Below are positions 2,301-49,306 of a DNA stretch of 64,000 bases, piece after piece. Both the position numbers and the translations under genes were made by a program. The stretch spans positions 179,167-243,166 of the IMG/VR virus record IMGVR_UViG_3300042560_001323, one strand, 5' to 3'. The notes under the pieces were generated by a model, which ran no database searches, was not told the DNA's origin, and worked only from the letters and a program-made list of their open reading frames with translations. Each line of letters starts with the position of its first letter. Positions within the stretch are counted from its first letter, which is position 1.

Positions 2301-3061
2301 CCATTATTGTAAATAAATGTAAGCGAACCATAGTCAAAACCGATAACCGCTTTATCTTTTCCATCAACTGTATCTGCGCTTGTGGGAATTACTGTAATGT
2401 AACGATTTGCTCCTTTAGATGCTTGGCCTAGCTCATCCTTGACAACATAACAAGTTCCATTTTCAACATTACCCGGAAGCGTTATCGTTACCGCTCCGGG
2501 ATAGTTTACTCCAATATAGTAATCAGTTAACTGAACCACGTGTGCTGCAGATGTTACAGAAACGGTTGCATAACGAATTCCACTGCTTCCTGGATCGGCA
2601 CCCTCCCATTTTTTTGTTGTATCGTTGTAACGAAGAAACTTATTATTGACTTTAACTGAGTTTCTATCAACATCATCTAAAAATTCTAGGCGAGTTTCCC
2701 CGCCGCCACCTATAGTTGAAAGTTGCTGTTGTATTCTTGCCAAAAATGACTGATAATGCTTTTGAAAAGCCTCAACAGTCATAAAGTTCTGATTAAGAGG
2801 AGTTAAAGGATCCTCATTTTTTGTATTAGTTGGCTCAGCGAGAAGTCCTAATGATTTCTCTATTAAAGATACTTCTTCTTTAATTGGCTCAATCTTTGGT
2901 TTCGATTTTATTGTTTTAGTCTTTCTTTTTGGTTTGGCTTCCTCCAGTAAAGGCTTAACAAAAAAATCATCAAAAGAAGTGGAAACTAATTCTTCTACTT
3001 CTTTTTGTTGTATTTTTTTTTCTTTACTTACAGCCTCAAAGAAATCTTTGAGTTCGCTCAT
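2285..3061 (-). CDS. Hypothetical protein with C-terminal tail-fibre-like domain
   Basis: Charged N-terminus, GGGGETRLEFLDDV linker, DYYIGVN..AVTITLP...YGSLTFIYNNGWRIV C-terminal domain. Confidence 0.6.
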   Translation of the reverse strand: MSELKDFFEAVSKEKKIQQKEVEELVSTSFDDFFVKPLLEEAKPKRKTKTIKSKPKIEPIKEEVSLIEKSLGLLAEPTNTKNEDPLTPLNQNFMTVEAFQKHYQSFLARIQQQLSTIGGGGETRLEFLDDVDRNSVKVNNKFLRYNDTTKKWEGADPGSSGIRYATVSVTSAAHVVQLTDYYIGVNYPGAVTITLPGNVENGTCYVVKDELGQASKGANRYITVIPTSADTVDGKDKAVIGFDYGSLTFIYNNGWRIV

Positions 3062-3219
3062 TCATCCTCTGAACCATTAAAGAGTGAAGTAGAAACTTCG
3101 GGAACTAGTGCATCAACTTTTTCCATTGCCTTATCCTTAATGATATCCTTGATAAGGTCACTAATTTGTGCCGGTGATTCGTCTGCTGCAATCAAATCAA
3201 GTAGGTCTTGGTCTTCCAT
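3058..3219 (-). CDS. Small acidic protein following gp20 (gp67-like position), MEDQDLLDLIAADESPAQISD...
   Basis: 53-aa ORF translated manually; resembles the conserved small gene downstream of cyanophage g20. Confidence 0.65.
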   Translation of the reverse strand: MEDQDLLDLIAADESPAQISDLIKDIIKDKAMEKVDALVPEVSTSLFNGSEDE

Positions 3220-3244
3220 TTTGTTATAAATTAACTAAGTCTAT

Positions 3245-11110: not shown

Positions 11111-11290
11111 AGTAACAAAAACCAATAAAATTCAAAAACTCTATTGGGTTTCTAGACGCTTCATAGCAGATGCTAAATGATGTGAATCACCATTTAGTCT
11201 TAATTCCGCTCCACGCCAGTAATCGACGTACTCCGCCGATGAAATTTCTTTATCGGTTAGATTCCTCCAACCTTCCTTTAAAATATTAAT
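11110..11290 (-). ncRNA. Predicted omegaRNA/reRNA scaffold overlapping tnpB 3' end and right end (approximate limits)
   Basis: Known TnpB architecture; this segment is conserved in copy 2 and its distal part survives in the deleted copy at 20.9 kb. Confidence 0.5.
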
Positions 11291-12337
11291 AGAGGCATTC
11301 AAATCTCTATCGTGCTGACAACCACAAGAAAGACAAGTCCATTCCCTAACCGAAAGCTGCATCTTGTCTTCTTTATGACCACAGTTAGAACAAGTCTTAC
11401 TGGAAGGAAAGAATCGGTTAATTTTAACCAGGACTTTACCATACCAGTTGCACTTGTATTCCAACATAGAAACAAAAGTAGACCACGCCGCATCGCTAAT
11501 AGACTTCGCTAATTTATGGTTCTTCCGCATTCCAGAAACGTTCAAGTTTTCAAGAACTATCAAGTCAAAAGTGTTCACTAAAGCAGTAGACACATTATGA
11601 AGAAAGTAAGTTCTTGAATTAGTAATGAAATCGTGTACTTTAGCAACTTTAATTCGTTGCTTAATGTAGCGGTTACTACCTTTAGTTTTACGACTTAAAT
11701 GTTTCTGGGCTTTTTTTAGTTTCGCTTGGTTCTTGCGAAACCATTTAGGATTGTTAATGACTTGACCATTACTTAAAACCATCAGGTCTTTAATGCCCAA
11801 ATCAATACCTACTACCTTGCCGGTTGAGGGTATTGGATTGAGTTCTTGTTTTACCAGGATAGAAACAAAATACTTTCCTGTTGGTGTTTTAGAAACCGTG
11901 ATGATCCTGAAATCTGCATCCTCCGGGATTTCACGGTCAATAACAACTTTAATCCAACCAATTTTCTCAAGTCTTACCAGACCGTTTTCTTGGTCTAAAA
12001 CGAACTTTTGATTGGGTAATCTAAAAGACTGCCGATTAGATTTTTTCTTAAAAGAAGGTCTACCTAGTTTGATTTTACGTTTTTTATTGAAAAACTGTTT
12101 CTCAAATTCAATAAAGTCATTTCTTTTCTGTTGAAGGGTAGCGGCAGAAACTTCTTTAAGAAACTCAAATTCAGGAGTGTCTTTTAATGTCTTTTCTGTA
12201 ACTACTTCTTTTGTCTGACTATTGAAGTTCTCAACAAGTTTATTCCAAACAAACCTGCAACAGCCGAAAGTTTTCGCTAATATAACTTCTTGTTCTTTAT
12301 CTGGATAAATCCGAAACTTGTATGCTTTTAAGTGCAT
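11141..12337 (-). CDS. tnpB: RNA-guided endonuclease TnpB, copy 1
   Basis: KAYKFRIYP HTH start; RuvC VGIDLG, VLENL, DRDLNASINI all intact; CxxC...CxxC zinc finger. Confidence 0.95.
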   Translation of the reverse strand: MHLKAYKFRIYPDKEQEVILAKTFGCCRFVWNKLVENFNSQTKEVVTEKTLKDTPEFEFLKEVSAATLQQKRNDFIEFEKQFFNKKRKIKLGRPSFKKKSNRQSFRLPNQKFVLDQENGLVRLEKIGWIKVVIDREIPEDADFRIITVSKTPTGKYFVSILVKQELNPIPSTGKVVGIDLGIKDLMVLSNGQVINNPKWFRKNQAKLKKAQKHLSRKTKGSNRYIKQRIKVAKVHDFITNSRTYFLHNVSTALVNTFDLIVLENLNVSGMRKNHKLAKSISDAAWSTFVSMLEYKCNWYGKVLVKINRFFPSSKTCSNCGHKEDKMQLSVREWTCLSCGCQHDRDLNASINILKEGWRNLTDKEISSAEYVDYWRGAELRLNGDSHHLASAMKRLETQ

Positions 12338-12940: not shown

Positions 12941-14314
12941 TTAACATTTCCATCTTCTACGGGCTGCTAGTCCTCTTGGTTTGTTCCAACTTCTTGAACG
13001 ACTGCAGAAATTTTTACGACGCTTCCAGGCTTTACTTCCCTTTTCAACATCTCCGGTTACTGGCGCCTTAAGGTTAGAACCAGTTGCACGATTGTATTTT
13101 TTTCTTCCTTTTGCTGTTAAACCGCCACCCGCTTCCACGGAAAGTTTTTCACCTCTGCCTACAGAAAGGCTAGGGCCAGCCTCTTCGAGATGATCAACTT
13201 CTTCTCCGATTGTTTTATTTTGAAGAAGATAGTTTTTTGACTTTGTATTGGGAAGCTGAATAATTGGCTGACCCACATTCTGGTTACCAACTTTATAACT
13301 TAAAACTCTTGCATCGGGATACACCTTAACAATGGCATCAGTTACTTCCTTCCTATTTGGAATCCGAACTTGGGGGAAGAAGAGTTGGCTGGTCATCATC
13401 TTTCCTCTCCAGGAGAAGAGGATCTGCATTACTTGACCATTCTGAACCGGTAGAGTTGCCTCCGATACTGGAACGCAGTTGGGGACTTCTTTCCCACCTT
13501 TTTTCTTAGTTCCAACCATCTCATAACCTTTCCAGCAGGGGTCTTTGCCTTTCATTTTTCTAGCCTCTTTAAGGCTAGCAGGAAGAACTAAATCAATAAA
13601 CTCAAATTTTGGGTTACCGAAAAGGTCAGTAACAATAGTTGATTCAGTTTGAACTTTCTCTACTTTTTTCAGTTCTGTGTAATAATTCGGTTTTTCTGCA
13701 AGATGTTGAAGTGCAATACCTTCTGCTTCTTCTTTATTGGTGGTATGCTCGCTTTCAACCTTAATGCCCATATTGAGTTGTTTTTGGATTCTCGCGGAAG
13801 ATACGCCGTGCTTGCCTGCAATATCCTCAACACTCATTACTGGCTTTGAGCCTTTTACATATCCTTTTTCCTTTTCTTTTTTATTTTCGGGACAGGGGCA
13901 TTCATCATCTTCGTTAAGTGAATTTAAAATTCTGTCTACGATTGTTGATTCCGTGCTAAATTTTGGTAATACCGATTCTTTTATTTTGTCAGTAATATCT
14001 TTTGTTAATTTACTGGTTGGAATTTTTGATTTTGCTTTGGTCCCAGCAGCAGGCCGTGAATGAGTTTCGGGGTTAATTTCAAACGATGATTCTTCTAACT
14101 CCTTACCAGTATTGAGATACTGTGCAGCATCTGTAGTAAAATCGGCTGCTCTCGTAATTTTAGATTGAATCCAGGCTGGAAGCTGTTGATTTTTACTTTT
14201 AATCTTTTTTCTTAAAATTGCAAGATTGGCTTCAATAGTATCTAATTCAACTGAAGACATATAACCTTCGGTATCATTCTTCATACCAGACTTAGCATTT
14301 TTACTTTTTGGCAT
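12941..14314 (-). CDS. Conserved cyanophage multi-motif protein between gp16 and gp17 (probable head-associated)
   Basis: MGIKVESEHT...ALQHLAEKPNYY, DPCWKGYEMVGTKKKGGKEVPNC and GGLTAKGRKKYN...RRWKC motifs. Confidence 0.7.
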   Translation of the reverse strand: MPKSKNAKSGMKNDTEGYMSSVELDTIEANLAILRKKIKSKNQQLPAWIQSKITRAADFTTDAAQYLNTGKELEESSFEINPETHSRPAAGTKAKSKIPTSKLTKDITDKIKESVLPKFSTESTIVDRILNSLNEDDECPCPENKKEKEKGYVKGSKPVMSVEDIAGKHGVSSARIQKQLNMGIKVESEHTTNKEEAEGIALQHLAEKPNYYTELKKVEKVQTESTIVTDLFGNPKFEFIDLVLPASLKEARKMKGKDPCWKGYEMVGTKKKGGKEVPNCVPVSEATLPVQNGQVMQILFSWRGKMMTSQLFFPQVRIPNRKEVTDAIVKVYPDARVLSYKVGNQNVGQPIIQLPNTKSKNYLLQNKTIGEEVDHLEEAGPSLSVGRGEKLSVEAGGGLTAKGRKKYNRATGSNLKAPVTGDVEKGSKAWKRRKNFCSRSRSWNKPRGLAARRRWKC

Positions 14315-27699: not shown

Positions 27700-30600
27700 T
27701 TAGGTGTAATTTTTATATTTGAGTGGATTTACTCTTTTTAGTATAGGAGATGTAGATATTCCAGATAACCCATTATTATAAACTGTAAACTCATTTGAGG
27801 ATGCTCTTTGGAGAACTGTGATTTTACCCCAACTATAAGTTCCGTAAATGCCAGTGAAACCGATACCGGTAATGCCGTTGTTGGTGATACTTACAGTAAC
27901 TTTAGAAACTGAAGTTGTACCAACGCCGGTCACAAATGTTTGAGTAATTGAAACATCTGCAACTCTATAAACATTATCTATGAAACTACTTCCAATTGAA
28001 ATAATAGAGCCGGATTCATCTAAAGATGTGATTCCATTTCCAACGAAAGAATTTTTTAGAACAAAATAGTAACCAGTTTGAATGCCACTAATTGTAACAG
28101 CAGCGCCAACAATACTGTTGTTTCTCATTGCAGATTCTTGTGGTATGTAAAGATTGAATACGAGACCAGTAGATGCAACTCCAACAGAAGTTGTTGCCAC
28201 TCCAGTAATGATTCCAAAATCACCTTCAATTGTGCTTGCAGTTATATCTTCAAAAACACTGGAAGGATTGCTGACCATTACTTGTGGTGGTAGTGATGAA
28301 GTATATCCCGTTCCTGGTGTTGTTATGGTTATTGAACTAATTGAACCGGAGGATACAGTTGCTGTTGCATAAGCCCTAGACGCAGTTGTTAGCCCAATTG
28401 GATTTGAGAAAGAAACCACTGGAGGACTTATATACCCCCAACCTCCATCTAAAATTGTAACACTTCTAATTGTACCCGCAATAGAAACGGTAGCAGTAGA
28501 AATAGCCGGACGAGTTTCGTCTTGTGTAATAATTTTAAATTTATTTCTATAATCTACTATAGCGTTCTCGCGTTGATCATCAAAGAATGTCCTAATGTTT
28601 TCAACAAAAATTGTGGTAGAGTTAATGCCAACAGTTTTAATAATATTAGTTGAAGGTTCAATAATTGGCTCATAAATTTCTCTAGTTTTTGGAACTTCTT
28701 TTTGGTCAATAAATAAGTCTTCAGTTTGTCTGCACCATTTTACCGGCCTTGTATATGTTTCGTCTTCTGAAATTCCTGGACCGCTATATGAAATTGTATT
28801 AATAGAATCTGAAGAATTTACGCTGGTAACGACTCTTTCATTTTCTGAATAACCCCGATCACCATTTAATTTAACTGTATCACCCCGTTTTATAGACTCT
28901 AAAACGTCAACATCCACTACATCAACAGAACCAGTACCGCGATAGAAAAGAACTACACAAGAATATCCTTCTTTTGGTGCCTCAGTAAATGTGATGAAAC
29001 TACTACCCGTAAAGTTATATCCATCACCTGGAATTTGAAGTATACCATTCACGAAGATAAGGAGAGTAGATTTGATATCAATAGGTGAACCATAACGAGC
29101 CCTAATGCTTCTAAGTTCGTTATCAATTTTGATTGGGAAAGATTTTCTTAATCCATTGAAAAGGTTTTCAATTGAGTCAATAATTTGAAGTTCACCGAAT
29201 GTCCAACCCGCAAATTTATTATTGTAAATCTCATCAACAGATAATCTAAAATTGCTATACGACGGCGAAGTAATAGTAGGAATACCAACTGTACCACCTA
29301 GACCTATAGTTAAAATGTCTCCTTTTTTATATCCAAATCCTCTATTTGTTAACTCGAGATTGACAACACTCATTCCAAGTCCAACATTAATTTTAACTTT
29401 TCCTCCGGTTCCAATACCAGAAGAGAGTGATTGATATTGAAGGGGCAGGTCTACATATGGAAGTGGGTCATCAAATTTAACAACTGGTGGATTGGTTGAA
29501 GTGTAGCTAAAACCTGGATTAGTTATTGCAACAGAAACAACATTACCATTTAAAATTGAGGCAATGCCGATATATCTCACTGTTGAAATGCCAGTAGTTG
29601 AAACATAAAGTCCAACATTTACAGTCTGAAGACCCGATCTATACCCGGAACCACTATTTCCAATACTAATTGATCTGATAGTTCCAGCAGTAGAAACAAC
29701 TGCAGTTCCCCCCGCCGCTACAAGTGGCTGAAGACCAAATCCCTGCGAATAGCCTACGGAAACAATAACTCCACCAATTGGTAGTCCTGTGCCATTTACA
29801 TCATAAGTCTGCGCTGCAGGGGCTCCTAGGAACCTTATAGATGTGATTCCAGAAGACTCCTCTAATGTGTAACTCCCGTAAGTTCTAAATGAACCGGCAA
29901 AATCTGATGGCGTTTGAAAGACCTCATTAATAAGTATTGCCCCATTGTTTGGAGAAAATTCTGCTATATTTTGATAATTAGATTTTAAAGTAAAAGATGA
30001 TGAGATTCCATTAAAATTATTTGAGATATCGTCAAATATAAAGTTTGTAGAATACGCATCAACCGTGGAATTCTTTGCACCACTCCTCATAAATACTCTA
30101 CCATTAAAATCTAATGTCGTTGTAACCCCAACATAGTCGACATCTTCGCCAGAACCTGTTGTGGTGCCAATTGGAGATGGACCTTTCGGCGGATCAACAA
30201 AATGAATAGTGTTATTGATGATATTATAATCGCCCAGAATTTTATATACGGTTGAATTTGTTGAATGGGTTTCAATTCCGGTGCCAACCCAGCCACGTTG
30301 AACTGAAACATCGTTTGTTGAGGCAATGCCAACAGCCACTACTTTTACAATTTCACTATTAATTTTTGCAAAATCGCCACTGCTGAAATTCTCAATACTC
30401 GAGAATAAAATAACTGTAGAACCTATTCCAACATAAGAAGTAGTTTTAGTGGAAGATGCAGATGAAACAACTGGTGACTGTATAGCCCCTCCCAATGAAA
30501 TAAGTGCTCTAGTATTTTGAGATGTTGCAGTTAAAGTATGTGTTAAACCTGCACCAACATTAGTTAAAATGATAGGAACTGGAATATCTCTAAGGGCAGA

Positions 30601-33600
30601 TTCTGCAGATGTTGAAAGACCAATAGCTGATTCACTGTATTTTATTACATATACCGTTGAAGGAAGTTTGTCAGTTGAACCAATTCCACTGATTGATGTA
30701 GTTTTAATACCAATTGGCGAAACATCATAAGAGTATGCAAGTTTTTCACCGTTTGTGAAAAAGTGATTCTCTAACTGTAAAACATTTGATGCTACATTCA
30801 CAACAGATGAATTACTGCCGACAAAACTCCTATTAAAAATTGGGTCGCTATTATATTTTAAGTCAAATTGTTTATTGAAACCATCAAAACCTAGACTAAT
30901 ATCGTCAATAGTTAGAACCCTATTGCCTACCGTTTCTGAATAATCTTGGAGTATTCTATTATTAAAATAAACTTGGTTTGAACCTAAATTTGAATCTATC
31001 AGATAATTATTTTCTGTAACAAGATCATAATCCTCAACACAATTTAAATTAACTTCCGAATCATTAAAAATTATAATGTTGGTTAATGACTCGGTTTCAG
31101 ATGAGCCGGTTCCGATTATATTTTCTGACTCAACTACGAGATCACTAAATTTCTTAAAACCGGAGATATGATTTAGACTGCTAACTGCATTGTTCCAAGT
31201 TTGATAATCAACTTTTGATTTTAATGAATATGCAAAAGAATTATAGTAATTATTGTCTTGAATTCTTTGGAACTCGTTATCAAGGAACCCCTTTTCGGTA
31301 TTCCAACCTTTTTTAACTATAGATGAAGATTTAATAATATAACGTGAATTGAAATCATATACTGTAGAAATTTTACCCCCGGAACGAGAATCTGAACCAA
31401 TAATTAATTGACCGGGTGTAAACTGATCTGTTGTGGATATTGTTAGGAGTTCATTATCACTATTCCAAAACTGAACAATTCCCTTTAAATTGTCTGCCGT
31501 TACAACTTCACCAATTAAGAATAAATTTTTAGAAAGTTCTGTGATAAATTGTGGGAAGAATTTTTCGGGAACTACAGAACCCGATGAAACGGTTGAATTG
31601 TATACGCCAGGATATTCGGTGTCACTTAATTTGTTGGCCAAATTATAAGTTATGGAGCCGTTTGAACCGCCAATATTCGGGCTAATACTAGTAATAGTAA
31701 ATCTGGAGTAGTCATAAGAAGATGAATTGTAGCCTTTGGCGGATGAGTCGGTTAAAATTGATACATTTTCAACCAAAACTTTGTCTCCGATAGCAAATGG
31801 AAAATCTTCAATATTGCTATAACTTGTAGTGAGGACTATGGCAACATCTTTAGTTGTTTCATTGAAAGAAATTGAGCTGATACCAATTGCATTTGAGTTA
31901 TTTGTTGGTATAATAATAGGTTGAGCATTATTAATACCTTTGCTATTTTTAATAATTTGAACTTCAGAATCACCAAGTTGATATCTTAAATCAACACCCG
32001 GAACCGGCTTTAAAGTTAAGCCATCCAATAGAACTAAAGTTGGAGCAAAAATATAATTTCTTCCAGTTGAAACAACAGATATTGTTTTTAATGAAGTCTG
32101 GGGGGCTACAATGATAACTACTGGAGTTTGGGTGGACGGTGTAAGAGTTAAATCTGCAGGATAATCAAAACCAATGTTATTAATATTAACTCGGTTGACT
32201 GAGCCAATGGACTTACTAACTACTTCAAAAATTGCATTCCTTCCTTGGTTGGTTATAACTGAACTAATTCCTGGTAAAAATTTATAGTTGCTACCACCAG
32301 AAGTAACTCGTATCGTATTAACGGGGCCGGTTGTAGTTTTAGATGTTGTTGTGTATGTTACATTATTTGTATAAACAGCAGCCTCCGGGGTTGCATCAAC
32401 GCTGTATGTGAATGACGTTGAACCAACCCCGCTAATTGCATACGTTCCTGAATAACCGCTATCAACATAATTAAGAGTATTATATTTTGATGTATTTTCT
32501 TCATCAATGATGACTTGTTTATTTTTTCTGGGGGTTAATTTATAGAATAACTGATTTGGTAGATTTTCATCATAGTTTAAAGTTACTGTTGCATCTAAAT
32601 CTACACCGATACGTCCAGATTTAATTACATTAAATGACGGCCCGCTGAAAGTAGTTTCAAATTTATTAATAAATTGCTTGTCTGTATAAAAATCAAAATC
32701 AAAAGCTGGAACCAATTGGAAACCATCATTGTCAGACAAACTTGAGTCCGAAAGATCAAAAATTGCGGAATTATTTTTTACGATATTTATACTAGGATTT
32801 ACTTCTGAAATTGTTCCATACGAAGCATTAGAAAGAGAAATTATATTTGGCTCGCTTAAAGATGCATTATAATATGAACTAGACAAACTTATTACATTTG
32901 AATTCAGTACAATGACATAATAACTCGTATTGCTAATTAACCCAGTAGTCGGAACTAATGAAGTATGAAGAATCTTTTGTCCAGTAAAATAATTATGGTT
33001 GGGGATTTTTATCGTTCCATATATTATATTAACATCTGTGGCCAAAAACTCTCTGGGATTTACAAGTAGCCGTTGGGTTGCCTGATTGTATATAATTTTA
33101 ATGTTTTTTGTTGAATTGGGTGTGGCCGAAACTGTAATTAAATCGCCAACATTAAGCTCCGAACTAGTTTTGGGGAAAACTGATACTAAATTTTTATCTA
33201 CTTGACCAATAGTTGAATCATACGAAGTTATGATGCTATGCTTTTTACCAGTTCCATTAACATTAAAATAAAGAATATTTGCCCCACTCGTTGTGTTATA
33301 ACCAACAAAGTTTCCAGTAGCACCAACTCCAACCTTTTCAGTGGATAAGCCAACAAAATCACTTGAATACCTAACTGCATAGACGGTAGTATTATCTTTC
33401 AATAGCGAAGTTGTAATACCATTAGTTGATATGGTAATTTCAGTGCCACCATTTATTTTATATGTTAACTTTTCACCAGTTTTCAGATTATGATCTGGAA
33501 TATAGATTGATCTTGACGGAACAAAAATATTAGTTAGACCAACACCTGGGGTAGAAAATGTTATCGTCTTGCCGAGGCCAATTCCTACACATTCCTCTGG

Positions 33601-36600
33601 ATTAAAGTAAATTTCTTTATTGATAAAAGAATTATTGAAGTCTTGAATCTCTGCACTAAAAGAGAACTTTCTTGGTACTTCTTTTATCGTGACTCCCACA
33701 GTATGATAAGTTCCAGCAGTGCCACCATAAGCTCGCTCCACGAAAAGTCTGGATGATTGTGTATCAATGTTTAGGACTTTTACATTTTCATTGTCAATTT
33801 GTAAAATATCATTTTCTCGGAGATATGGAAAATCTAAGTTTCCGTAAAGATTGATATATGTTACAATTCCGGTAATACCTGAGACATTAACATCGGTATT
33901 TAATGTGTACTTTTGGCTTGAAACCGATGCCCTAAAAGATTTTTGCAGATTTAATTTATTGTGACTTAGATTTTTAATAGAAACTATATCTCCATTAGAA
34001 ATATTGTGAGGTAAACTACTAAATCCAATTACATTATTTGATGAATTAGGTATAAACTCTACATTAAAAATTGTTGTTGAACCTACACTAATGATGTTAA
34101 CATCTTTCCCTTTAACGGAAGAAACTTCTGCTGATGCATTAATACCTCCCGAAGTTTCGCTATCAAAAATTAACTTATCTTTAACTTTATAACCATCTCC
34201 ACCATCGGTGACCAAAACCTCTTCAACCGAACCAGTTAAAGTGCTGGTTACAGTAGAGGAATGATCGTATGTGTTAAATGGAGATAGAAGATATTTATAG
34301 AAACTTTTTTCAGATTTAAGCCTAAATGGGGTTGTATTTCTAAGCCAACCGGTTTTGTTTAAATCTATTGTATCTTGATTTGAATAATAATCAAAATTAA
34401 AAGTAATTGGTTTAGATTTATAGGATTCACCGATAAGATAAGGAAATACCGGTCTAAAATAATCCTTAAATGGGCCAGAGTTTTCAACCCCTTGGTCAGA
34501 AACGGTTGCAAAATATGCATAGGTTCCGTTGGGGAAATCTGGAGTGATGCAATATCTGCCATTATGCTCATCTAAATCACCAGAATTATTAAATTCGTAA
34601 TCTTCAATAAAAATACCAGCAGAATAGAGAGTCGTATTTGGGCGGCCTTCTTTAAGGGATAATCCATAACTACTCTGTAGTAATTTTACCCTTCCCGAGG
34701 TTTTATGTTCATAACCATACGGGCCGTAAATGGGATTCCCATCATATGCCCAACCAATAATAGGAGAATGTGAATCTGAAATTGTTTCCCTATTATAAGA
34801 ATCTAGAGTTAAGTCTGGACGATAGGTTGGGTTATTTGATACATATTTTACACCTTGCAGCATTTGCCGCAATTTCCTAGGGGCATACCCGTGGACATAC
34901 TCTAAACCTAAATCTGAGCGAGTTCCTCTTGTTATAAGTCCATCATCAGCCGTAATTTGATTGGTTTGTATTAAACGTTCATTCCAATTAATACTCCACG
35001 ATTTTGTATTAGTTCTTATTTCAGCATTTGAACCAGCGGAAACTACGGTTAGAGATGTATTTTTTTGCTCATAACCGTATCCAGAATTGATAATATTAAC
35101 ACTTTTTAATTCGCCGTCAGCGATAATTGGTGTTAATACTGCACCATTGCCGTTACCGCTGATTATAATATCTGGTGGAGAATTGTAACCTGAACCAGAG
35201 TTTATAATAAGAACTTCAGTAATTTTTCCATTTGATATAATTACTTGAAGTGTGGCATCTTTTCCGCTATTAATGGATATATTTGGCTGGCGATTATAGT
35301 TAATGATATTCTCTTGGCCATAATTTTGCCCACCACCCTCTACAAAAACTCTATTAATCCTTCCTCTGAAGATAGGGTTGGCGGGCGGTAATTCTGGAGT
35401 CGGTGTTGAACATAAATCTATAACCCCTTCAATAGTAACTTTAATTGGCTCATAATTAAAGAAATGTTTACCAATGCCGGAGGATGAAAAGTTGATATAT
35501 TGCTGAGAAGTTAAGTAAAAATCTTTACTTGTTAAAATACCTACGCTTGCTACTTGAGATAGCTTAAAATTGTTTTCATCAACTTCAGTTGCATAATAAG
35601 AAGTATTAGTTTGTATGCCTACGATTGGACTTTGGCTATAAGACTCGTAATTTATAAGTTCTCCAGTTTTAAAACCGTGACCGGGAAAGTTTATTGTATC
35701 GGTTATAATATTAATAGCTGAGGAATCAACAGAAATTCTACGATTTGTGTAACCTTTTCCTGGATTTGTTACCACGATTGATGAAATCTTTAGTTTCGGA
35801 CTAAAAGAAACTAACCTGTGAATACCAAATCCGGTTACATTAAGATTTATTGTATTTAAATCAGAAACTGAATCATCATAAGTTTTATAAAGTTTAACTT
35901 CATTTGGACTTACCCGCGAGACGTAATATTCGGCATTTGTTGTGATTCCTGTTACATATGAATAACCATCTGGAACGAATAGCACTTTTTCGTAATTAAA
36001 AAAGTTATGGCAATCTGTAAACTTGATAATATTACCAAAAATATTTTTAGTATTGAAGGTAGCAAAGTGCTCAAAATTACCAATTTCGGGTTCTGCTTTT
36101 GCTCCAGTTCCGTTACCACCAGTTATCGTTATTGATGGTTCACCGATAACGATTAGATTTGAGTTATTTAAGCGAATTTCTTTAAGATCCCCGACAATTT
36201 CTGGGGTTAATTTTGCTCCAGAACCCCGTTCATCTATAATATTAATTGTCGGTGGATTGTTAATGTCGTATCCATCGCCGGATGAAACCACAACAGCAGA
36301 TACAATTGGTCCATAGTAAACAGAATTTTGGGACTTATAATTTAAAATTTCAACACCATTTAAAAGAATACCAATATTGCCAACTGGAGTTGTTTCAACG
36401 GTCTTTCTATTGATTGGCTGCGTAATTTTTCTAATTATCTTTTGATTGGTTAATGTTTTACCAGTAAAATCATTATATTCTAAAGTATTATTGTTTACGG
36501 TGCCAGAAACGGTTAAATAACTCTCAGCTTTAAGATTGGAGAGGCTTGTTGCCAAAGAGAAAAAATCATCATTTACTTTTTTAATATAATATGTTCCTTT

Positions 36601-38385
36601 GGGTATACCCAAATTATTAACTGATGGATAGTCATATAAAACAATATCTCCAGATAAGAAGCCGTGATTTGTATAATTTAAAATTTCCCCAGAAAAGGTT
36701 CCAGATAATACGATTTTACGATTGGATACTTCTAGGGGCTGCTGAAAATAAAAAGGTAGTGATGGAGATGCAACAAAAACACTTTCGTTTAAATCTTCAT
36801 AAACATTTTGGACATTAGCTGAATAGATTTCTACATTTTTAAAATTGCTTGCGGAAACATTTGAAATGTTCTTTTCAATATAATCAATCGAAGAAAGCGT
36901 TAGCACCCCCTGCCCCTGAACAATAAAATTTGTAACATTTAATTTTGAGTAAACGTCTGTGGTTATTATTGTTCCATTGGTTAGAATAATATTCAAAGAG
37001 TCGCCAACTGAAAAAATGTTATCGTCAAAAGTTTTAATTTGATATTTTGATGTTATTGCATCAATAAGAGTAATACTTTCAACATAGTATGAGATTGGGA
37101 TATTATAAATCCAATTTTTTGAACGAACAGAACTGCTGAGTTTACCTAAAGTTTTTGGCTTAATAGAATCTCCTACTATTAGATTATATGCAGAATCAAT
37201 TTCTTCAAATTCGCCGATAACACCAGTTACTCTAACCGCAACAATATTGTTTTTATCTGAACCGCTATAACCATAAGCAAATGCATCAACTCTAACCGAT
37301 TCACCTGCTTCTAAATCTGATAAAATTCCACTACAGTCAAAAAATTGGGTTAAAGATTTTGATTCGTATTGAATTAAAGAATAATCATCTAAAACCAAAA
37401 AACCACTATAGGGAAATCCGACTGTAGAATCCACACTAATTGCATTTGAGCCCGCAATAACTTTTTTGCTTATTCTAGTCTTAGGATGAATAGAAAATTC
37501 ACCAAAAACAGAACCAGCAACGTCAATATCTTTGTTAAAATCGTAATCAAGACTTATAATGTAATAGTCACTACCGTTGCGAGATATTTTTTCGACTTTA
37601 CTGATTGAACCACTTGCCTTAGGATACTGGTCGGTCCTATCTTGGAATAAAGTTCTGTTTTCCAATAATAGTGGATCACCTAAAATAGCTTCAACAAAAA
37701 TATCTTTTGTTACCCGATATTCTGCCGCAGATGGTGTAAATAGATAATCTCTTGGTTTAATTACCTCTACTTTTTCACCGTAAAGAGCGCCGAAAAGAAT
37801 TTCAAAAGATTTGTCTGTTCCTTTTACTGAATAGAAGTCTTTTGATTTCTCAATGAATAGTTTTTGATTTACATTAGAACCAAATTCACGTCCTTCAAAT
37901 CCCGGAATATATTGCTTTTTGAGTTTATCTAGAAATTTATTAAGAAAAAGTATGCTAAGATTTTCTACAACTTCACCACTTAGATGACTATCAGAGACAC
38001 TTGCAGAAAATTCTAATTGAGAATTGGAAATTCCACTAAATCCCCTAACGCAATCAACAAAAGAAGTTTCAGTTTTTGAAGTATATGTAATAATTTCAGA
38101 ACCAATCTTCAATAGACCATAAGAAATTGGAAAGCCATCTGTAGATTCAACAAGAATGTCAGTATCTGAAAATGAAATGTCTGCAGAAAGGGTCGTATTT
38201 TCTACAAGATTGGTTAGATTTTGAAGCTTTGTATGATTAGAAAGATTTGATATTAAGTCAAAAGAAGCTCCAGGATATTCTCCAGAAATGTAATACTGCT
38301 TGATAAACTCCACTAAAAGTGGAGACTCTTGCCGCATAAATTCGGGAAATTGATTCTCAATAATAGAACTTATTTTAACTGACAT
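27700..38385 (-). CDS. gp7: Baseplate wedge initiator gp7-like (3561 aa)
   Basis: Position between gp6 and gp8; FY.VKGT..SF.ILF.AL.G, HSPIIGWAYDGNPIYGPYG, RIQDNNYY..FAYSLKS motifs. Confidence 0.85.
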   Translation of the reverse strand: MSVKISSIIENQFPEFMRQESPLLVEFIKQYYISGEYPGASFDLISNLSNHTKLQNLTNLVENTTLSADISFSDTDILVESTDGFPISYGLLKIGSEIITYTSKTETSFVDCVRGFSGISNSQLEFSASVSDSHLSGEVVENLSILFLNKFLDKLKKQYIPGFEGREFGSNVNQKLFIEKSKDFYSVKGTDKSFEILFGALYGEKVEVIKPRDYLFTPSAAEYRVTKDIFVEAILGDPLLLENRTLFQDRTDQYPKASGSISKVEKISRNGSDYYIISLDYDFNKDIDVAGSVFGEFSIHPKTRISKKVIAGSNAISVDSTVGFPYSGFLVLDDYSLIQYESKSLTQFFDCSGILSDLEAGESVRVDAFAYGYSGSDKNNIVAVRVTGVIGEFEEIDSAYNLIVGDSIKPKTLGKLSSSVRSKNWIYNIPISYYVESITLIDAITSKYQIKTFDDNIFSVGDSLNIILTNGTIITTDVYSKLNVTNFIVQGQGVLTLSSIDYIEKNISNVSASNFKNVEIYSANVQNVYEDLNESVFVASPSLPFYFQQPLEVSNRKIVLSGTFSGEILNYTNHGFLSGDIVLYDYPSVNNLGIPKGTYYIKKVNDDFFSLATSLSNLKAESYLTVSGTVNNNTLEYNDFTGKTLTNQKIIRKITQPINRKTVETTPVGNIGILLNGVEILNYKSQNSVYYGPIVSAVVVSSGDGYDINNPPTINIIDERGSGAKLTPEIVGDLKEIRLNNSNLIVIGEPSITITGGNGTGAKAEPEIGNFEHFATFNTKNIFGNIIKFTDCHNFFNYEKVLFVPDGYSYVTGITTNAEYYVSRVSPNEVKLYKTYDDSVSDLNTINLNVTGFGIHRLVSFSPKLKISSIVVTNPGKGYTNRRISVDSSAINIITDTINFPGHGFKTGELINYESYSQSPIVGIQTNTSYYATEVDENNFKLSQVASVGILTSKDFYLTSQQYINFSSSGIGKHFFNYEPIKVTIEGVIDLCSTPTPELPPANPIFRGRINRVFVEGGGQNYGQENIINYNRQPNISINSGKDATLQVIISNGKITEVLIINSGSGYNSPPDIIISGNGNGAVLTPIIADGELKSVNIINSGYGYEQKNTSLTVVSAGSNAEIRTNTKSWSINWNERLIQTNQITADDGLITRGTRSDLGLEYVHGYAPRKLRQMLQGVKYVSNNPTYRPDLTLDSYNRETISDSHSPIIGWAYDGNPIYGPYGYEHKTSGRVKLLQSSYGLSLKEGRPNTTLYSAGIFIEDYEFNNSGDLDEHNGRYCITPDFPNGTYAYFATVSDQGVENSGPFKDYFRPVFPYLIGESYKSKPITFNFDYYSNQDTIDLNKTGWLRNTTPFRLKSEKSFYKYLLSPFNTYDHSSTVTSTLTGSVEEVLVTDGGDGYKVKDKLIFDSETSGGINASAEVSSVKGKDVNIISVGSTTIFNVEFIPNSSNNVIGFSSLPHNISNGDIVSIKNLSHNKLNLQKSFRASVSSQKYTLNTDVNVSGITGIVTYINLYGNLDFPYLRENDILQIDNENVKVLNIDTQSSRLFVERAYGGTAGTYHTVGVTIKEVPRKFSFSAEIQDFNNSFINKEIYFNPEECVGIGLGKTITFSTPGVGLTNIFVPSRSIYIPDHNLKTGEKLTYKINGGTEITISTNGITTSLLKDNTTVYAVRYSSDFVGLSTEKVGVGATGNFVGYNTTSGANILYFNVNGTGKKHSIITSYDSTIGQVDKNLVSVFPKTSSELNVGDLITVSATPNSTKNIKIIYNQATQRLLVNPREFLATDVNIIYGTIKIPNHNYFTGQKILHTSLVPTTGLISNTSYYVIVLNSNVISLSSSYYNASLSEPNIISLSNASYGTISEVNPSINIVKNNSAIFDLSDSSLSDNDGFQLVPAFDFDFYTDKQFINKFETTFSGPSFNVIKSGRIGVDLDATVTLNYDENLPNQLFYKLTPRKNKQVIIDEENTSKYNTLNYVDSGYSGTYAISGVGSTSFTYSVDATPEAAVYTNNVTYTTTSKTTTGPVNTIRVTSGGSNYKFLPGISSVITNQGRNAIFEVVSKSIGSVNRVNINNIGFDYPADLTLTPSTQTPVVIIVAPQTSLKTISVVSTGRNYIFAPTLVLLDGLTLKPVPGVDLRYQLGDSEVQIIKNSKGINNAQPIIIPTNNSNAIGISSISFNETTKDVAIVLTTSYSNIEDFPFAIGDKVLVENVSILTDSSAKGYNSSSYDYSRFTITSISPNIGGSNGSITYNLANKLSDTEYPGVYNSTVSSGSVVPEKFFPQFITELSKNLFLIGEVVTADNLKGIVQFWNSDNELLTISTTDQFTPGQLIIGSDSRSGGKISTVYDFNSRYIIKSSSIVKKGWNTEKGFLDNEFQRIQDNNYYNSFAYSLKSKVDYQTWNNAVSSLNHISGFKKFSDLVVESENIIGTGSSETESLTNIIIFNDSEVNLNCVEDYDLVTENNYLIDSNLGSNQVYFNNRILQDYSETVGNRVLTIDDISLGFDGFNKQFDLKYNSDPIFNRSFVGSNSSVVNVASNVLQLENHFFTNGEKLAYSYDVSPIGIKTTSISGIGSTDKLPSTVYVIKYSESAIGLSTSAESALRDIPVPIILTNVGAGLTHTLTATSQNTRALISLGGAIQSPVVSSASSTKTTSYVGIGSTVILFSSIENFSSGDFAKINSEIVKVVAVGIASTNDVSVQRGWVGTGIETHSTNSTVYKILGDYNIINNTIHFVDPPKGPSPIGTTTGSGEDVDYVGVTTTLDFNGRVFMRSGAKNSTVDAYSTNFIFDDISNNFNGISSSFTLKSNYQNIAEFSPNNGAILINEVFQTPSDFAGSFRTYGSYTLEESSGITSIRFLGAPAAQTYDVNGTGLPIGGVIVSVGYSQGFGLQPLVAAGGTAVVSTAGTIRSISIGNSGSGYRSGLQTVNVGLYVSTTGISTVRYIGIASILNGNVVSVAITNPGFSYTSTNPPVVKFDDPLPYVDLPLQYQSLSSGIGTGGKVKINVGLGMSVVNLELTNRGFGYKKGDILTIGLGGTVGIPTITSPSYSNFRLSVDEIYNNKFAGWTFGELQIIDSIENLFNGLRKSFPIKIDNELRSIRARYGSPIDIKSTLLIFVNGILQIPGDGYNFTGSSFITFTEAPKEGYSCVVLFYRGTGSVDVVDVDVLESIKRGDTVKLNGDRGYSENERVVTSVNSSDSINTISYSGPGISEDETYTRPVKWCRQTEDLFIDQKEVPKTREIYEPIIEPSTNIIKTVGINSTTIFVENIRTFFDDQRENAIVDYRNKFKIITQDETRPAISTATVSIAGTIRSVTILDGGWGYISPPVVSFSNPIGLTTASRAYATATVSSGSISSITITTPGTGYTSSLPPQVMVSNPSSVFEDITASTIEGDFGIITGVATTSVGVASTGLVFNLYIPQESAMRNNSIVGAAVTISGIQTGYYFVLKNSFVGNGITSLDESGSIISIGSSFIDNVYRVADVSITQTFVTGVGTTSVSKVTVSITNNGITGIGFTGIYGTYSWGKITVLQRASSNEFTVYNNGLSGISTSPILKRVNPLKYKNYT

Positions 38386-41605: not shown

Positions 41606-42943
41606 TAGTAACAAAAACCAATAAAAGTAAACCTCTATTGATTTCCTAAACGCTTCACAGCAGATGCTAAAGGGTGAAAATCACCGCTCAGTCTTAATTC
41701 CGCTCCACGCCAGTAATCGACGTACTCCGCCGATGAAAGTTCTTTATCGGTTAGGCTGCGCCAACCTTCCTTTAAAATATTAATAGAGGCATTCAAGTCT
41801 CTATCGTGTTTTGAACCGCAAGACGGACAAGTCCATTCCCGAATTTTTAAAGGCATCTTGTCTTCCTTATGTCCACAAGAACTACAAGTCTTACTGGAAG
41901 GAAAGAATCGGTTAATTTTAACCAGGACTTTGCCATACCAATCACACTTATACTCTAACATAGTAACAAAAGTAGACCAAGAGGCATCCGAGATTGATTT
42001 GGACAACTTGTGATTCTTCAACATCCCAGAAACATTCAAGTCTTCAACCGAAATTACATCAAAAGTTCTAACCAGAGCTGTTGAGATGTTATGGAGAAAG
42101 TAAGTTCTGGAATTGGTAATGTATTCGTGTATTCTAGCAACTTTAATACGTTGCTTAATGTAACGATTACTGCCTTTAGTCTTGCGACTTAAATGCTTCT
42201 GGGCTCTTTTGAGTTTCGCTTGGTTCTTGCGAAACCATTTAGGATTGTTAATGGCTTGACCGTTTGAAAGAATGAACAAGTCTTTAATACCCAAATCAAT
42301 ACCTACTACCTTGCCGGTAGAGGGTATTGGATTGAGTTCTTGCTTAACCAGAATAGAAACGAAGTATTTACCGGTTGGAGTTTTAGAAACCGTGATGATC
42401 CTGAAATCTGCATCCTCCGGGATTTCACGGTCAATAACAACTTTAACCCAACCAATTTTCTCCAGTCTAACCACTGAATTTTCTTGGTCTAACTTGAACT
42501 TTTGATTGGGAAGTCTAAAAGACTGACGATTTGATTTCTTCTTAAAAGAAGGCCGTCCTAATTTGGCCTTTCTTTTCTTATTGAAAAACTGTTTCTTGAA
42601 CTCAATAAAGTCATTTCTTTTTTGTTGAAGTGTAGAAGCTGAAACTTCTTTAAGAAACTCAAATTCTGGAGTGTCTTTTAATGTCTTTTCGTTAATAAAT
42701 TCCTTAGAGTTACTGTTGAAGTTTTCAACGAGTTTATTCCAAACAAACCTGCAACAACCGAAAGTCTTCGCCAGTAAAACTTCTTGCTCTTTATCTGGAT
42801 AAATCCTGAACTTGTATGCTTTTAAGTGCATCTGCTCTGATTATTGGTTGGCAATACTATTTAGTAAAGTTTTATTTTATAAGGGGAGAAGAAATTCTCC
42901 CCACCTGAAAAGCGCCAACCAACCAGGCATCTTTATTTAGTGA
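41606..42943 (-). mobile_element. TnpB-only element, copy 2 (about 1.34 kb)
   Basis: Shares both end sequences with copy 1; no tnpA adjacent. Confidence 0.85.
41635..42831 (-). CDS. tnpB: RNA-guided endonuclease TnpB, copy 2
   Basis: Same length (398 aa) as copy 1, about 47 substitutions by hand count (about 88% identity); RuvC D/E/D intact. Confidence 0.95.
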   Translation of the reverse strand: MHLKAYKFRIYPDKEQEVLLAKTFGCCRFVWNKLVENFNSNSKEFINEKTLKDTPEFEFLKEVSASTLQQKRNDFIEFKKQFFNKKRKAKLGRPSFKKKSNRQSFRLPNQKFKLDQENSVVRLEKIGWVKVVIDREIPEDADFRIITVSKTPTGKYFVSILVKQELNPIPSTGKVVGIDLGIKDLFILSNGQAINNPKWFRKNQAKLKRAQKHLSRKTKGSNRYIKQRIKVARIHEYITNSRTYFLHNISTALVRTFDVISVEDLNVSGMLKNHKLSKSISDASWSTFVTMLEYKCDWYGKVLVKINRFFPSSKTCSSCGHKEDKMPLKIREWTCPSCGSKHDRDLNASINILKEGWRSLTDKELSSAEYVDYWRGAELRLSGDFHPLASAVKRLGNQ

Positions 42944-47296: not shown

Positions 47297-47323
47297 TTTG
47301 TTTGTGCTGCTGTGGCGTCTTAT

Positions 47324-47716
47324 TTAAGATAATTTTGAGGTATCTTCATTTTTCAGGACTTCTTCTTGAAGTTTTAGAACTGGTTGCAAAATGAATTTTC
47401 TGAACTTGTTTATGATATTTTCACGAAGATAACGTTCCATTAGAACCGAATCCCACTTTGGCGGGCAAGATAAGACTTTTCCGTAATGATGGGCAAATAG
47501 TTCTCCCCAGAATGATTTATGGTCTTGTAGTGCTTCCCTATTTACGGTAATCTTAAATTCTACTACTGGAATTAGATTCTCATTAACATAGGTTTTTTCT
47601 TCAAATTGAAATGCATTCTCGTCTTCAAAAATATTGTATTCTGGAATATGAATACCTTGAGATTTTAGAGTCTTTTTAAGGTGTTCGTCAATTGTAAAGT
47701 TTGAAAATAATGTCAT
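47324..47716 (-). CDS. Hypothetical protein
   Basis: ORF track. Confidence 0.55.
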   Translation of the reverse strand: MTLFSNFTIDEHLKKTLKSQGIHIPEYNIFEDENAFQFEEKTYVNENLIPVVEFKITVNREALQDHKSFWGELFAHHYGKVLSCPPKWDSVLMERYLRENIINKFRKFILQPVLKLQEEVLKNEDTSKLS

Positions 47717-47746
47717 AATGTTTGGGTTTGGGAGTCTTATGTATGG

Positions 47747-47950
47747 TTATGGAATGGTGGCAATATTTTCTGGTTCTACGTAAGGTTCAAACTCTCTCAA
47801 AAAAACTCCAAGAGAGCATCTAAACTTATTACCATCTGGATTTGTTCCCAACACTCTTGAGTGATAAACTTCGGTGATAGTAAGAATGTAGTTTGGTTCA
47901 TCTGGTCTTATCCATTTGGTTCCTGGTATTAATTCTTCTACTTTAGCCAT
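47747..47950 (-). CDS. Hypothetical protein
   Basis: ORF track; same leader GGTTATG...ATAATG context as neighbours. Confidence 0.5.
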   Translation of the reverse strand: MAKVEELIPGTKWIRPDEPNYILTITEVYHSRVLGTNPDGNKFRCSLGVFLREFEPYVEPENIATIP

Positions 47951-48054
47951 AATGTTTGGTTCTTATGTATGGTTATGAAAACATTGATAGTATGAAGAGG
48001 AAGACTCCGAAGAGTTCAAAGAATAGGAGGATTTGGAGCATTTTGAACTTTAAT

Positions 48055-48081
48055 GAAAAAGGAACTCCGAAGAGTTCCCTT
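48055..48081 (-). terminator. psbA terminator with C(UUCG)G tetraloop
   Basis: GGGAACTCTTCGGAGTTCCTTTTTC on minus strand; related hairpin at about 48003-48017. Confidence 0.75.
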
Positions 48082-48086
48082 ATTTA

Positions 48087-48562
48087 TCAACCAATAGTTG
48101 GGGCTTTTAGAGCAATTTCTTGAGTAGAAACTGCAGCCAAATCTACACTTGACCCATAAGTTTACCATTCTTATGGAGTGGACTATATCATCACCCTTTA
48201 AGGTGTCGGACGCTTATTCCTGTTATTAAGGGAACTATATCCCCCAGGTAGTCTCTGAAGTTTCCTTGAGTGTACTCAAGGCTCACCTGCTGATTGCCCA
48301 TGTTTTTGGGGGGGGGGGTTCCAGCAATTCACCCAGTTTCGTCAATACTCTTACGAGTAAGGGACACCGATTAAAACTTAATGTCCACGGGAGGTGCTGC
48401 AATAAATGCTAAAATAAAGCAAATAGTAGCAGCAAGTAAACAGGGAATCATAAGAACCGAAAAATGCCCAAGATAGAGGCGATTATTCGTACTTGTTACC
48501 CAATTAAGATAACGTTCCCAGAGGTTGTCGCCAGAACGGCGTGTAGCAATTGTAGCAGTCAT
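48087..48562 (-). pseudogene. psbA: psbA remnant: exon 1 (48381-48562, D1 residues 1-60) + group I intron + extreme C-terminal exon (48087-48145); central about 280 codons missing
   Basis: [53 protein letters not shown]; DLAAVSTQEIALKAPTIG* matches the D1 C-terminus. Confidence 0.9.
48146..48380 (-). mobile_element. ORF-less group I intron (235 nt)
   Basis: P AATTGCTGGAA, Q AATCAGCAG, R TTCAGAGACTA, S GATATAGTCC; IGS GTGTCC pairs with exon GGACAT (U-G at splice site); P9 hairpin; P9.0 AC/GT and terminal G at 48146. Confidence 0.88.
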
Positions 48563-48631
48563 ATTTGAAAATAGGGTAGAAAAAGTTCGTAGGGACGAAC
48601 GTGTTTATTATTTCTTCTCACCCCTAGAGAA

Positions 48632-48684
48632 GATATGAGAGACGTATTTGACGTGCAAAGTCTCGGTAAGCACGAGCAGCAATG
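48632..48684 (-). repeat. psbA leader motif (PhotoRC-II-like), copy 1 of a 53-bp direct repeat
   Basis: CATTGCTGCTCGTGCTTACCGAGACTTTGCACGTCAAATACGTCTCTCATATC; 1 mismatch to 49200-49252. Confidence 0.75.
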
Positions 48685-48710
48685 AAGTTTATGTTATTAT
48701 TTTGTAATAA

Positions 48711-48878
48711 TCAAAAACTTAATCCTTTAAATCCATCAATAATATTTTGTAAATGTTTCTCGGCACTTTCTATATTAGAACCATTTTTCTTTATTAATTC
48801 CATCAATTCATCATAACTTCTTCCAGATATTTCTGGGTCAAGAGGAACAGATTTGATAAATTCTTCTTTAGTAATCAT
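48711..48878 (-). CDS. Small hypothetical (MITKEEFIKSVPLDPE...)
   Basis: 55-aa ORF translated manually. Confidence 0.5.
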   Translation of the reverse strand: MITKEEFIKSVPLDPEISGRSYDELMELIKKNGSNIESAEKHLQNIIDGFKGLSF

Positions 48879-48905: not shown

Positions 48906-49250
48906 TTAATGTTTCATCCATTCACCATTTTCAACATCCCAATGCCTCCTATCATAAACTTGGAAATTAACAGTTATGAAAAATAGTGAAATACTAGTCC
49001 AAAGTCCTGCGTGGTCTGTTTTGATAGTATATTTAAACTCAACTCCAAACAAAATATTATCTATATTTACTTCAAATTCCCAGAACTTATGTTTAAGTGG
49101 AGTTTTATCAGAAATAAAATAAATATTTTTAAAGTTGTCTATTGGCAGTTCAATTTTAAAATTTACCGTAATCATTATTTTTATAAAAATGGCGGTATGG
49201 ATATGAGAGACGTATTTAACGTGCAAAGTCTCGGTAAGCACGAGCAGCAA
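48906..49250 (-). CDS. Hypothetical protein; true start probably MITVNF at about 49175
   Basis: Annotated N-terminus is the repeat read in frame; C-terminal TDHAGL...YDRRHWD motif. Confidence 0.55.
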   Translation of the reverse strand: MLLVLTETLHVKYVSHIHTAIFIKIMITVNFKIELPIDNFKNIYFISDKTPLKHKFWEFEVNIDNILFGVEFKYTIKTDHAGLWTSISLFFITVNFQVYDRRHWDVENGEWMKH

Positions 49251-49252
49251 TG
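49200..49252 (-). repeat. Second copy of psbA leader motif
   Basis: 53-bp near-identical direct repeat. Confidence 0.8.
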
Positions 49253-49306
49253 TGAGGATTTCCTGACTTGCTGATGTATTTATAGTAACACCAGTTCACG
49301 TTTTTG

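Follow-up and report, generated by a model that had tools for sequence, protein, structure and literature searches.

The psbA locus of the window, a term used here for the whole 64,000-nucleotide stretch of DNA that was analysed, consists of a first exon, a group I intron and the last 19 codons of the gene with their stop codon, and is framed by a PhotoRC-II leader and a terminator-like hairpin. The same reduced composition had been read from the sequence in a preliminary description, and the coordinates, the Rfam score and the translation agree with it. The features are, in their order along the minus strand:

49167..49255, minus strand: second, partial copy of the PhotoRC-II motif (33.9 bits, below the gathering score), with a 53-nt direct repeat of 48632-48684
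48600..48687, minus strand: PhotoRC-II RNA motif, intact (Rfam RF01717, 52.7 bits compared to a gathering score of 39)
48381..48562, minus strand: psbA exon 1, 182 nt, encoding D1 residues 1-60 plus 2 nt (canonical nt 1-179), with the 3' end GACAU
48146..48380, minus strand: group I intron as a whole, 235 nt (Rfam RF00028)
48328..48380, minus strand: intron segment assigned to the site-179 intron "A", with the P1/P10 guide sequence, P2 and the 5' strand of P3 (CUGGGUG)
48308..48327, minus strand: putative crossover zone, with TTGCTGGAA (48327..48319) followed by a run of eleven C residues, C11 (48318..48308)
48146..48307, minus strand: intron segment assigned to the site-1021 intron "Z", with P5 to P9, the 3' strand of P3 (CGUCCGA), P7 and the terminal G at 48146
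48087..48145, minus strand: remnant of the last psbA exon, with TA, DLAAVSTQEIALKAPTIG (codons D342 to G359) and the TGA stop codon at 48089..48087
48056..48079, minus strand: terminator-like hairpin directly 3' of the stop codon, GGGAACUC-UUCG-GAGUUCC followed by U5, as read from the sequence

The PhotoRC-II motif is the usual leader 5' of cyanophage psbA and ends here 37 nt before the start codon at 48562. Exon 1 has a length of 182 nt because D1 carries one additional N-terminal codon, and it ends in GAC-AU, at canonical D1 nt 179. It was matched by amino acids 1-61 of the S-PM2 D1 protein at an E-value of 1e-23 (tblastn) and is 97% identical to P0001. If extended into the intron, the exon-1 ORF ends in PPVDIKF and a stop codon, an ending shared with many relatives; a protein search with this ORF retrieved many metagenomic first-exon ORFs ending in PPVDIKF, and the same exon-1 ORF as in the window is present on a contig of 1494 bp from a third JGI metagenome. 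Decay of exon 1, as judged from the substitutions W32H, G34S and T40C, was considered and rejected, since the residues in question (YLGHFS and IPCLL) are also present in many relatives whose genes are long or complete.

The intron was identified with 66.2 bits (gathering score 50, E 1.4e-14) over the full RF00028 model, positions 1-253, and it follows directly upon the end of exon 1 at 48381, which bears out the earlier reading of a complete intron core inserted after GAC-AT at D1 nt 179. The 11-nt homopolymer that had been pointed out within the intron is the C11 run on the coding strand. The 3' exon is identical to the last psbA exon of the IMG/VR contig L008, and the D1 tail that it encodes, amino acids 341-359, was recovered by tblastn with the S-PM2 D1 protein. 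The terminator-like hairpin is the same as that located 3' of psbA in S-PM2 and S-SRM01. Further upstream, the 53-nt direct repeat (48632-48684 and 49200-49252) has copies that are 98% identical and represent the 5' half of the PhotoRC-II motif. The 568-bp insert between the two PhotoRC-II copies contains small ORFs on the minus strand (48711-48878 and 48906-49175), for which no Pfam match was obtained, and is missing in the scaffold L010 and in a relative from sequencing run X3.

The window lies at the end of a 243,166-bp IMG/VR record, of which it covers the final 64 kb; the record has direct terminal repeats and is rated 100% complete. The genome, which was found in lake-water metagenome runs, is that of a large freshwater T4-like cyanophage. 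T4-type genes for terminase, sheath, neck, gp6 and gp8 are present in it, and Synechococcus phages of ~244 kb gave the best matches to the ORF at 12941-14314 in the structural region. The structural-gene region also contains two minus-strand ORFs of 398 aa (11141-12337 and 41635-42831) with the full TnpB / IS605 OrfB architecture, comprising the domains HTH_OrfB_IS605, OrfB_IS605 and Cas12f1-like TNB, and a minus-strand ORF of 3561 aa (27700-38385) is located amid the baseplate and tail genes. Two more group I introns were identified in the genome outside of the window, at C1:116376-116570 (55.2 bits; L016, L017 for this and the following) and C1:21275-21511 (54.8 bits).

The locus does not encode the full set of five helices and of P680, pheophytin, QB and Mn-cluster ligands that a functional D1 comprises. 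Across the complete genome, the Pfam profile PF00124 (Photo_RC) recovered exon 1 only, at profile positions 1-62 and with 25.8 bits compared to a cut-off of 27, and tblastn with the S-PM2 D1 and D2 proteins (E up to 10, word size 2) recovered only amino acids 1-61 and 341-359. The suggestion of the preliminary description that the missing exons might reside elsewhere is contradicted by both searches of a complete, terminally repeated 243-kb genome. The tblastn search with D2 over the same 243 kb revealed no psbD either, and psbD is likewise absent from S-SRM01, a freshwater relative of 241 kb. PF00504 gave no match to hli genes in the genome, a search that short hli genes may escape. With no other psbA and no psbD, the phage would replicate without a reaction-centre gene of its own.

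The intron of the window is composed of two parts that resemble two different introns of related phages. Its nt 1-53 are identical to intron A of the psbA gene in contig L011 (53/53), and the 46-nt core of this segment has an exact match in 31 IMG/VR contigs (L018-L048). The 162 nt assigned to intron Z are identical at 148 positions (91%) to Z of L008 and at 139 positions to Z of L011, as compared to a median of 99 positions (61%) for 32 A introns, and they differ from the X3 relative only at 48152 (~99% identity). The switch from A to Z occurs within the conserved core element GAATTGCTGGAA, or GAATTGCTGGAA(ACC) in its extended form. Both parent introns contain TTGCTGGAA, and they have GAATTGCTGGAAACC in common at J3/4-P4; in L011, the length shared between A and Z is at most 21 nt anywhere and ~15 nt at the switch point. 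What is found is, accordingly, a collinear intron with a 5' part from one intron and a 3' part from another, joined in a conserved core element, and the DNA that separates the parent introns in relatives is deleted from the window genome, as in hybrids of the T4 type. These comparisons support the interpretation of the window intron as a chimera of the site-179 intron A and the site-1021 intron Z, for which the parents were observed either on separate relatives or on L011, which is more distant, and not in a direct ancestor.

The switch point itself is not clean. The parental sequences are GGAAACCGAAAGG in A and GGAAACCCTCCAAAACA in Z, and the C11 run (48308-48318; G11 on the plus strand), the exact length of which may be uncertain in short-read data, is located precisely at the switch and is present in neither parent type. 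The junction also carries one extra A seen in neither parent. From the absence of the C11 run in both parents it follows that the exchange was not cleanly homologous or that the true parent is unsampled, and slippage during repair, later growth of the homopolymer or an unsampled parent are all possible origins of the run and of the extra A.

The P3 helix provides a separate line of evidence. A P3 of 7 bp with 6 Watson-Crick pairs and 1 G-U pair is present in 40 of the 41 natural introns of this family that were compared, from 21 loci, and seven types of compensating strand sequences can be distinguished among these 40, such as CUGGGUG/CGCCCAG (A) and UCGGAUG/CGUCCGA (Z). With an A-type 5' strand and a Z-type 3' strand, the P3 of the window has 3 Watson-Crick pairs, 3 G-U pairs, 1 mismatch and a duplex energy of -2.9 kcal/mol as compared to -11.9 kcal/mol for A and -9.5 kcal/mol for Z. 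Two unmatched halves of a covarying helix is the pattern that a recent fusion should leave behind, and the mismatch suggests that the ribozyme would be weakened.

The splice sites show the same mixed descent. P1 is intact (GGACAU with GUGUCC, -7.2 kcal/mol), the pair at the 5' splice site being U-G, and the intron ends in ...CAAGUG, with the terminal G at a position homologous to that of Z in L008 and L011. The guide sequence AAUCG, just upstream of the intron's part of P1, matches the start of exon 2 in relatives (CGA...; L011) and does not match the present 3' exon, UAGAUU, in accordance with the earlier remark that the P10 segment AATCG suits an expected CGAT rather than the actual 3' exon. 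In both L008 and L011, the guide sequence of Z pairs with the last exon in a P10 of 7 bp (AAAUCUA with UAGAUUU in L008), which fixes the 3' splice site of Z at the position homologous to 48146/48145, canonical nt 1021. The hybrid intron has no P10 for 48146/48145, nor for an alternative site at G48148. Because P3 is badly weakened and no P10 can form with the present 3' exon, splicing of the hybrid is likely to be inefficient.

The missing coding sequence spans canonical nt 180-1021, that is 842 nt or 280.7 codons, and the exons are therefore joined out of frame. If the transcript were not spliced, translation would stop after 63 aa (at PPVDIKF), and if it were spliced at the native site 48146/48145, the product would be a frameshifted protein of 103 aa; this computed translation confirms the out-of-frame product that had been anticipated. 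We infer that D1 can be made neither with splicing at the native Z site nor without splicing. Use of the G located 2 nt upstream (48148) as the 3' splice site would give an in-frame product of 80 aa; this possibility was weighed and nothing was found in its support. None of the RNA runs searched contains the locus. The locus is probably still transcribed, as judged from its promoter region, PhotoRC-II leader and terminator, which are intact.

Relatives of the phage show what the locus may have looked like before the deletion. The contig L008, which was found by an exact-pattern search across the 3' junction, has a psbA gene that terminates with intron Z; with splice sites marked by a slash, this intron starts at ...AACUUCCCAU/UAGAAAAUCUAGUGG... 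and finishes at ...CUUAUGGGCCAAGUG/UAGAUUUGGCUGCAG. In L011 (L011:99-3990; JGI 3300040743 Ga0439277_03240) and L012, two of the contigs retrieved with the exon-1 ORF, psbA is interrupted by seven group I introns scored by Rfam, which are located at canonical nt 179, 230, 317, 556, 990, 1002 and 1021 and of which the first is A and the last is Z. The L011 gene has micro-exons with lengths of 12 nt (ATGCACGAGCGT) and 19 nt, a LAGLIDADG ORF in intron 1 (A, behind the core) and a GIY-YIG ORF in intron 2, and its introns 6 and 7 have an identical stretch of 119 nt in common, which suggests gene conversion between introns. Exon 1 of L011 is ~76% identical to exon 1 of the window, although the 46-nt segment of intron A is exactly conserved, as would fit an intron that spreads horizontally.

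All of the 31 IMG/VR carriers of intron A continue into the native A core (...GGAAACCGAAAGGYAAUCAGCAGCC...), and exon 2 follows behind intron A in each of them that extends far enough; only the window has a Z core and no exon 2. The number of psbA introns in these 31 contigs varies widely, from one to seven or more. The X3 relative, from a run of another study, has flanks that are ~97% identical to those of the window: a 1317-bp contig tracks the window from 47318 to 48306 and then departs into the 5' part of Z, and a 3663-bp contig starts at the psbA leader and connects it to central psbA exons, so that its psbA locus measures at least ~2.5 kb as compared to 476 nt in the window. By these comparisons, the deletion is specific to the window genome. 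The exact 5' junction pattern GGACATTAAG...GTGTCC had no match in IMG/VR, and no further copy of the hybrid junction was found among the JGI metagenome contigs scanned, where the window's own record may be hidden; as far as these scans go, the hybrid is a single case, seen in its own lineage only. A search of IMG/VR with the 130-aa ORF located 3' of psbA gave one distant locus (L004), which has no psbA.

The closest exon 1 (97% amino acid and 94.6% nucleotide identity) is that of L010, an ENA scaffold of 75.7 kb with psbA at 1634-3951. This gene has no intron at site 179; it has one at site 276 with a 283-aa ORF, for which no Pfam match was obtained, and another at the S-PM2 site, behind which a short Endonuclease_7 ORF is located. 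That the closest exon 1 is accompanied by other introns indicates that exon and intron complements are mosaic among close relatives. The psbA gene of S-SRM01 (L003, NC_070963.1: 207378-209780) has three group I introns, at sites 276 (with an endonuclease ORF), ~750 and 1002; only two partial D1 CDS are annotated in the record, leaving the last two exons unannotated, and the S-SRM01 paper (PMC8557907) mentions one endonuclease-bearing intron.

Taken together, the sequence comparisons indicate that the locus is very probably a real and recent psbA pseudogene that arose when two group I introns of the same gene recombined. The ancestral psbA would have resembled that of close relatives and would have had a number of related group I introns, with A (nt 179) and Z (nt 1021) among them. 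At the J3/4-P4 element GAATTGCTGGAAACC shared by A and Z, a homology-guided exchange or a template switch would have eliminated everything in between, that is ~842 nt of coding sequence together with the introns located there, at least 2 kb overall. The resulting hybrid would owe its guide sequence, P2 and the 5' strand of P3 to A, and the catalytic core with P9 and the 3' splice site would stem from Z. A recombination between two introns with a loss of about 280 codons had been put forward in the preliminary description, and it is supported by the A/Z chimera, the unmatched P3 halves and the 280.7 missing codons; its phrase "AMG loss in progress" is a fair label for a recent pseudogene.

One alternative, which we consider improbable, is that the locus is retained as a mini-gene for a useful product, such as the 80-aa peptide obtained via G48148 or a regulatory RNA. 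The leader, the start codon, exon 1 and the terminator are all intact, the use of G48148 would restore the frame, and the sequence is the same in two studies. However, the 3' site of the relatives is set at 48146/48145 by the 7-bp P10, the hybrid has a crippled P3 and lacks a P10 for either site, the identity between samples is equally accounted for by a recent event, and there was no other instance among the 31 intron-A carriers or in the JGI metagenome scans. In its most explicit form, the remnant would be kept because the hybrid splices partly at G48148 to yield an 80-aa membrane peptide (D1 helix A and the C-terminal tail), or because a leader-plus-ribozyme RNA is formed, with an effect on the turnover of photosystem II in the host; we give little credence to this scenario.

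A second alternative is that the locus is an assembly artefact, in which a full psbA with both A and Z was present and the assembler jumped between the similar cores, possibly helped by the homopolymer, and omitted the loop. Introns of one gene can indeed have long identical tracts, as seen in introns 6 and 7 of L011 (119 nt), and contigs from other samples stop at the conserved element (L014 ends in ...GAATTGCTGGA). Also, in run X2, from a different study, both exon-intron junctions are identical to those of the window, but a gap at 48266-48362 lies exactly over the crossover and the homopolymer, and the crossover is bridged in the source sample only, by two short-read assemblies. Against an artefact, the independent Logan assembly (k=31) of the source run X1 spans the locus with one contig of 5861 bp at a depth of 742 and with 0 differences, while it breaks at the true 53-nt repeat 250 nt away, where the repeat unitig has a depth of 1575, twice 742, these depths being whole-contig means and not local values. 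All loose ends inside the intron in X1 stem from contigs with a depth of 13 or less, and when psbA-like contigs from X1 were placed on the central exons of L008, their summed depth was always below 742 and only 0-13 over positions 514-684, so that no central psbA exon of comparable depth is present. Likewise, the identity between A and Z is short at the switch point and elsewhere, and the IMG assembly gave the same sequence independently, in a closed 243-kb record with terminal repeats. The collapse across similar introns that had been raised as an alternative in the earlier work is contradicted by these data, and we regard it as very unlikely.

It is equally hard to believe that a real deletion unrelated to the introns, that is a random illegitimate event, had its ends in two introns by chance. 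Such an event would agree with the unclean junction, where the C11 run and the extra A are absent from both parents. However, both ends fall at the same J3/4-P4 position of homologous ribozymes, within a shared element of 12-15 nt, and the outcome is a collinear, full-length core that still scores 66 bits in Rfam, which would be rare if the ends were random. Finally, a split gene, with central exons elsewhere in the genome that are joined by trans-splicing, has a practically negligible probability: it could appeal to the two additional group I introns in the genome, but the Photo_RC profile and tblastn with full D1 and D2 recover exon 1 and the 19-codon tail only, and the window intron has a complete contiguous core and is no half-intron.

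Among the auxiliary metabolic genes of cyanophages, psbA is the emblematic one, and the loss of such genes is rarely seen directly, while here the scar that a recombination between introns would have left is still legible. The locus suggests that a heavy load of introns, up to seven in relatives, is a liability in addition to being a parasite burden. The hybrid ribozyme with its mismatched P3 would offer a natural test of how much mispairing in the core is tolerated by group I introns, and the presence of this phage at a depth of ~742x in one lake metagenome, with neither a D1 nor a D2 gene, bears on the dispensability of psbA in fresh water. The intron-dense psbA genes of the relatives are a noteworthy by-product of the analysis. 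Our literature search retrieved no description of freshwater cyanophage psbA genes with multiple introns (up to seven), nor any paper on the natural loss of psbA through recombination between introns.

We compared the locus to known systems with psbA introns. The freshwater cyanophages S-SRM01 (NC_070963), L008, L010 and L011 belong to the same D1 clade (YLGHFS, IPCLL) and share with the window the intron families A and Z as well as the PhotoRC-II leader. Their psbA genes, with three introns in S-SRM01 and seven in L011, have kept all exons, whereas the window has the first and last exons only. The S-PM2 psbA intron, with its free-standing endonuclease F-CphI (NC_006820; Zeng et al. 2009, as cited in PMC3984707; PMC6083498), is of the same family; the window core at 48334..48175 is 79% identical to it, and the layout of psbA from leader to terminator is the same. 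In S-PM2, the intron is located after MHER, at nt 1002 of an intact gene, and thus near the 3' end of psbA as stated in the earlier description, whereas the splice sites of the window correspond to nt 179 (5') and nt 1021 (3'). Unlike S-PM2, the window has no Endo VII gene 3' of psbA. The insertion site of the 5' half is the same as that of Oc.psbA.1 in the chloroplast of Oedogonium cardiacum, a site-179 intron of subgroup IA1 with a LAGLIDADG ORF in L9 (PMC2442088, Table 4), which upholds the earlier identification of site 179 as an intron site in green-algal chloroplast psbA. The full phage intron A in L011 also has a LAGLIDADG ORF, whereas in the window the ORF-bearing 3' part of A is gone, and so is exon 2.

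The process that best explains the locus is known so far from T4 laboratory crosses, and the locus would be a natural counterpart of those hybrid-intron experiments of 1989-90. Bryk and Belfort reportedly described hybrid introns from recombination between T4 self-splicing introns in 1990. Such a precedent for hybrid introns that arose when self-splicing introns recombined is attributed to Hall, Liu and Shub (1989, Nature 340:574) where it is cited in PMC4810243. The T4 hybrids have much in common with the window: both concern a T4-like phage, an exchange at short conserved core elements, the deletion of the intervening DNA and one collinear hybrid intron between the outer exons. The T4 hybrids were reportedly laboratory events between introns of different genes, whereas the hybrid of the window is natural and arose, by our interpretation, within one gene. 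The T4 hybrids are also reported to splice, whereas the hybrid of the window has unmatched P3 halves and exons joined out of frame, which would lead to the loss of a gene and not to exon shuffling.
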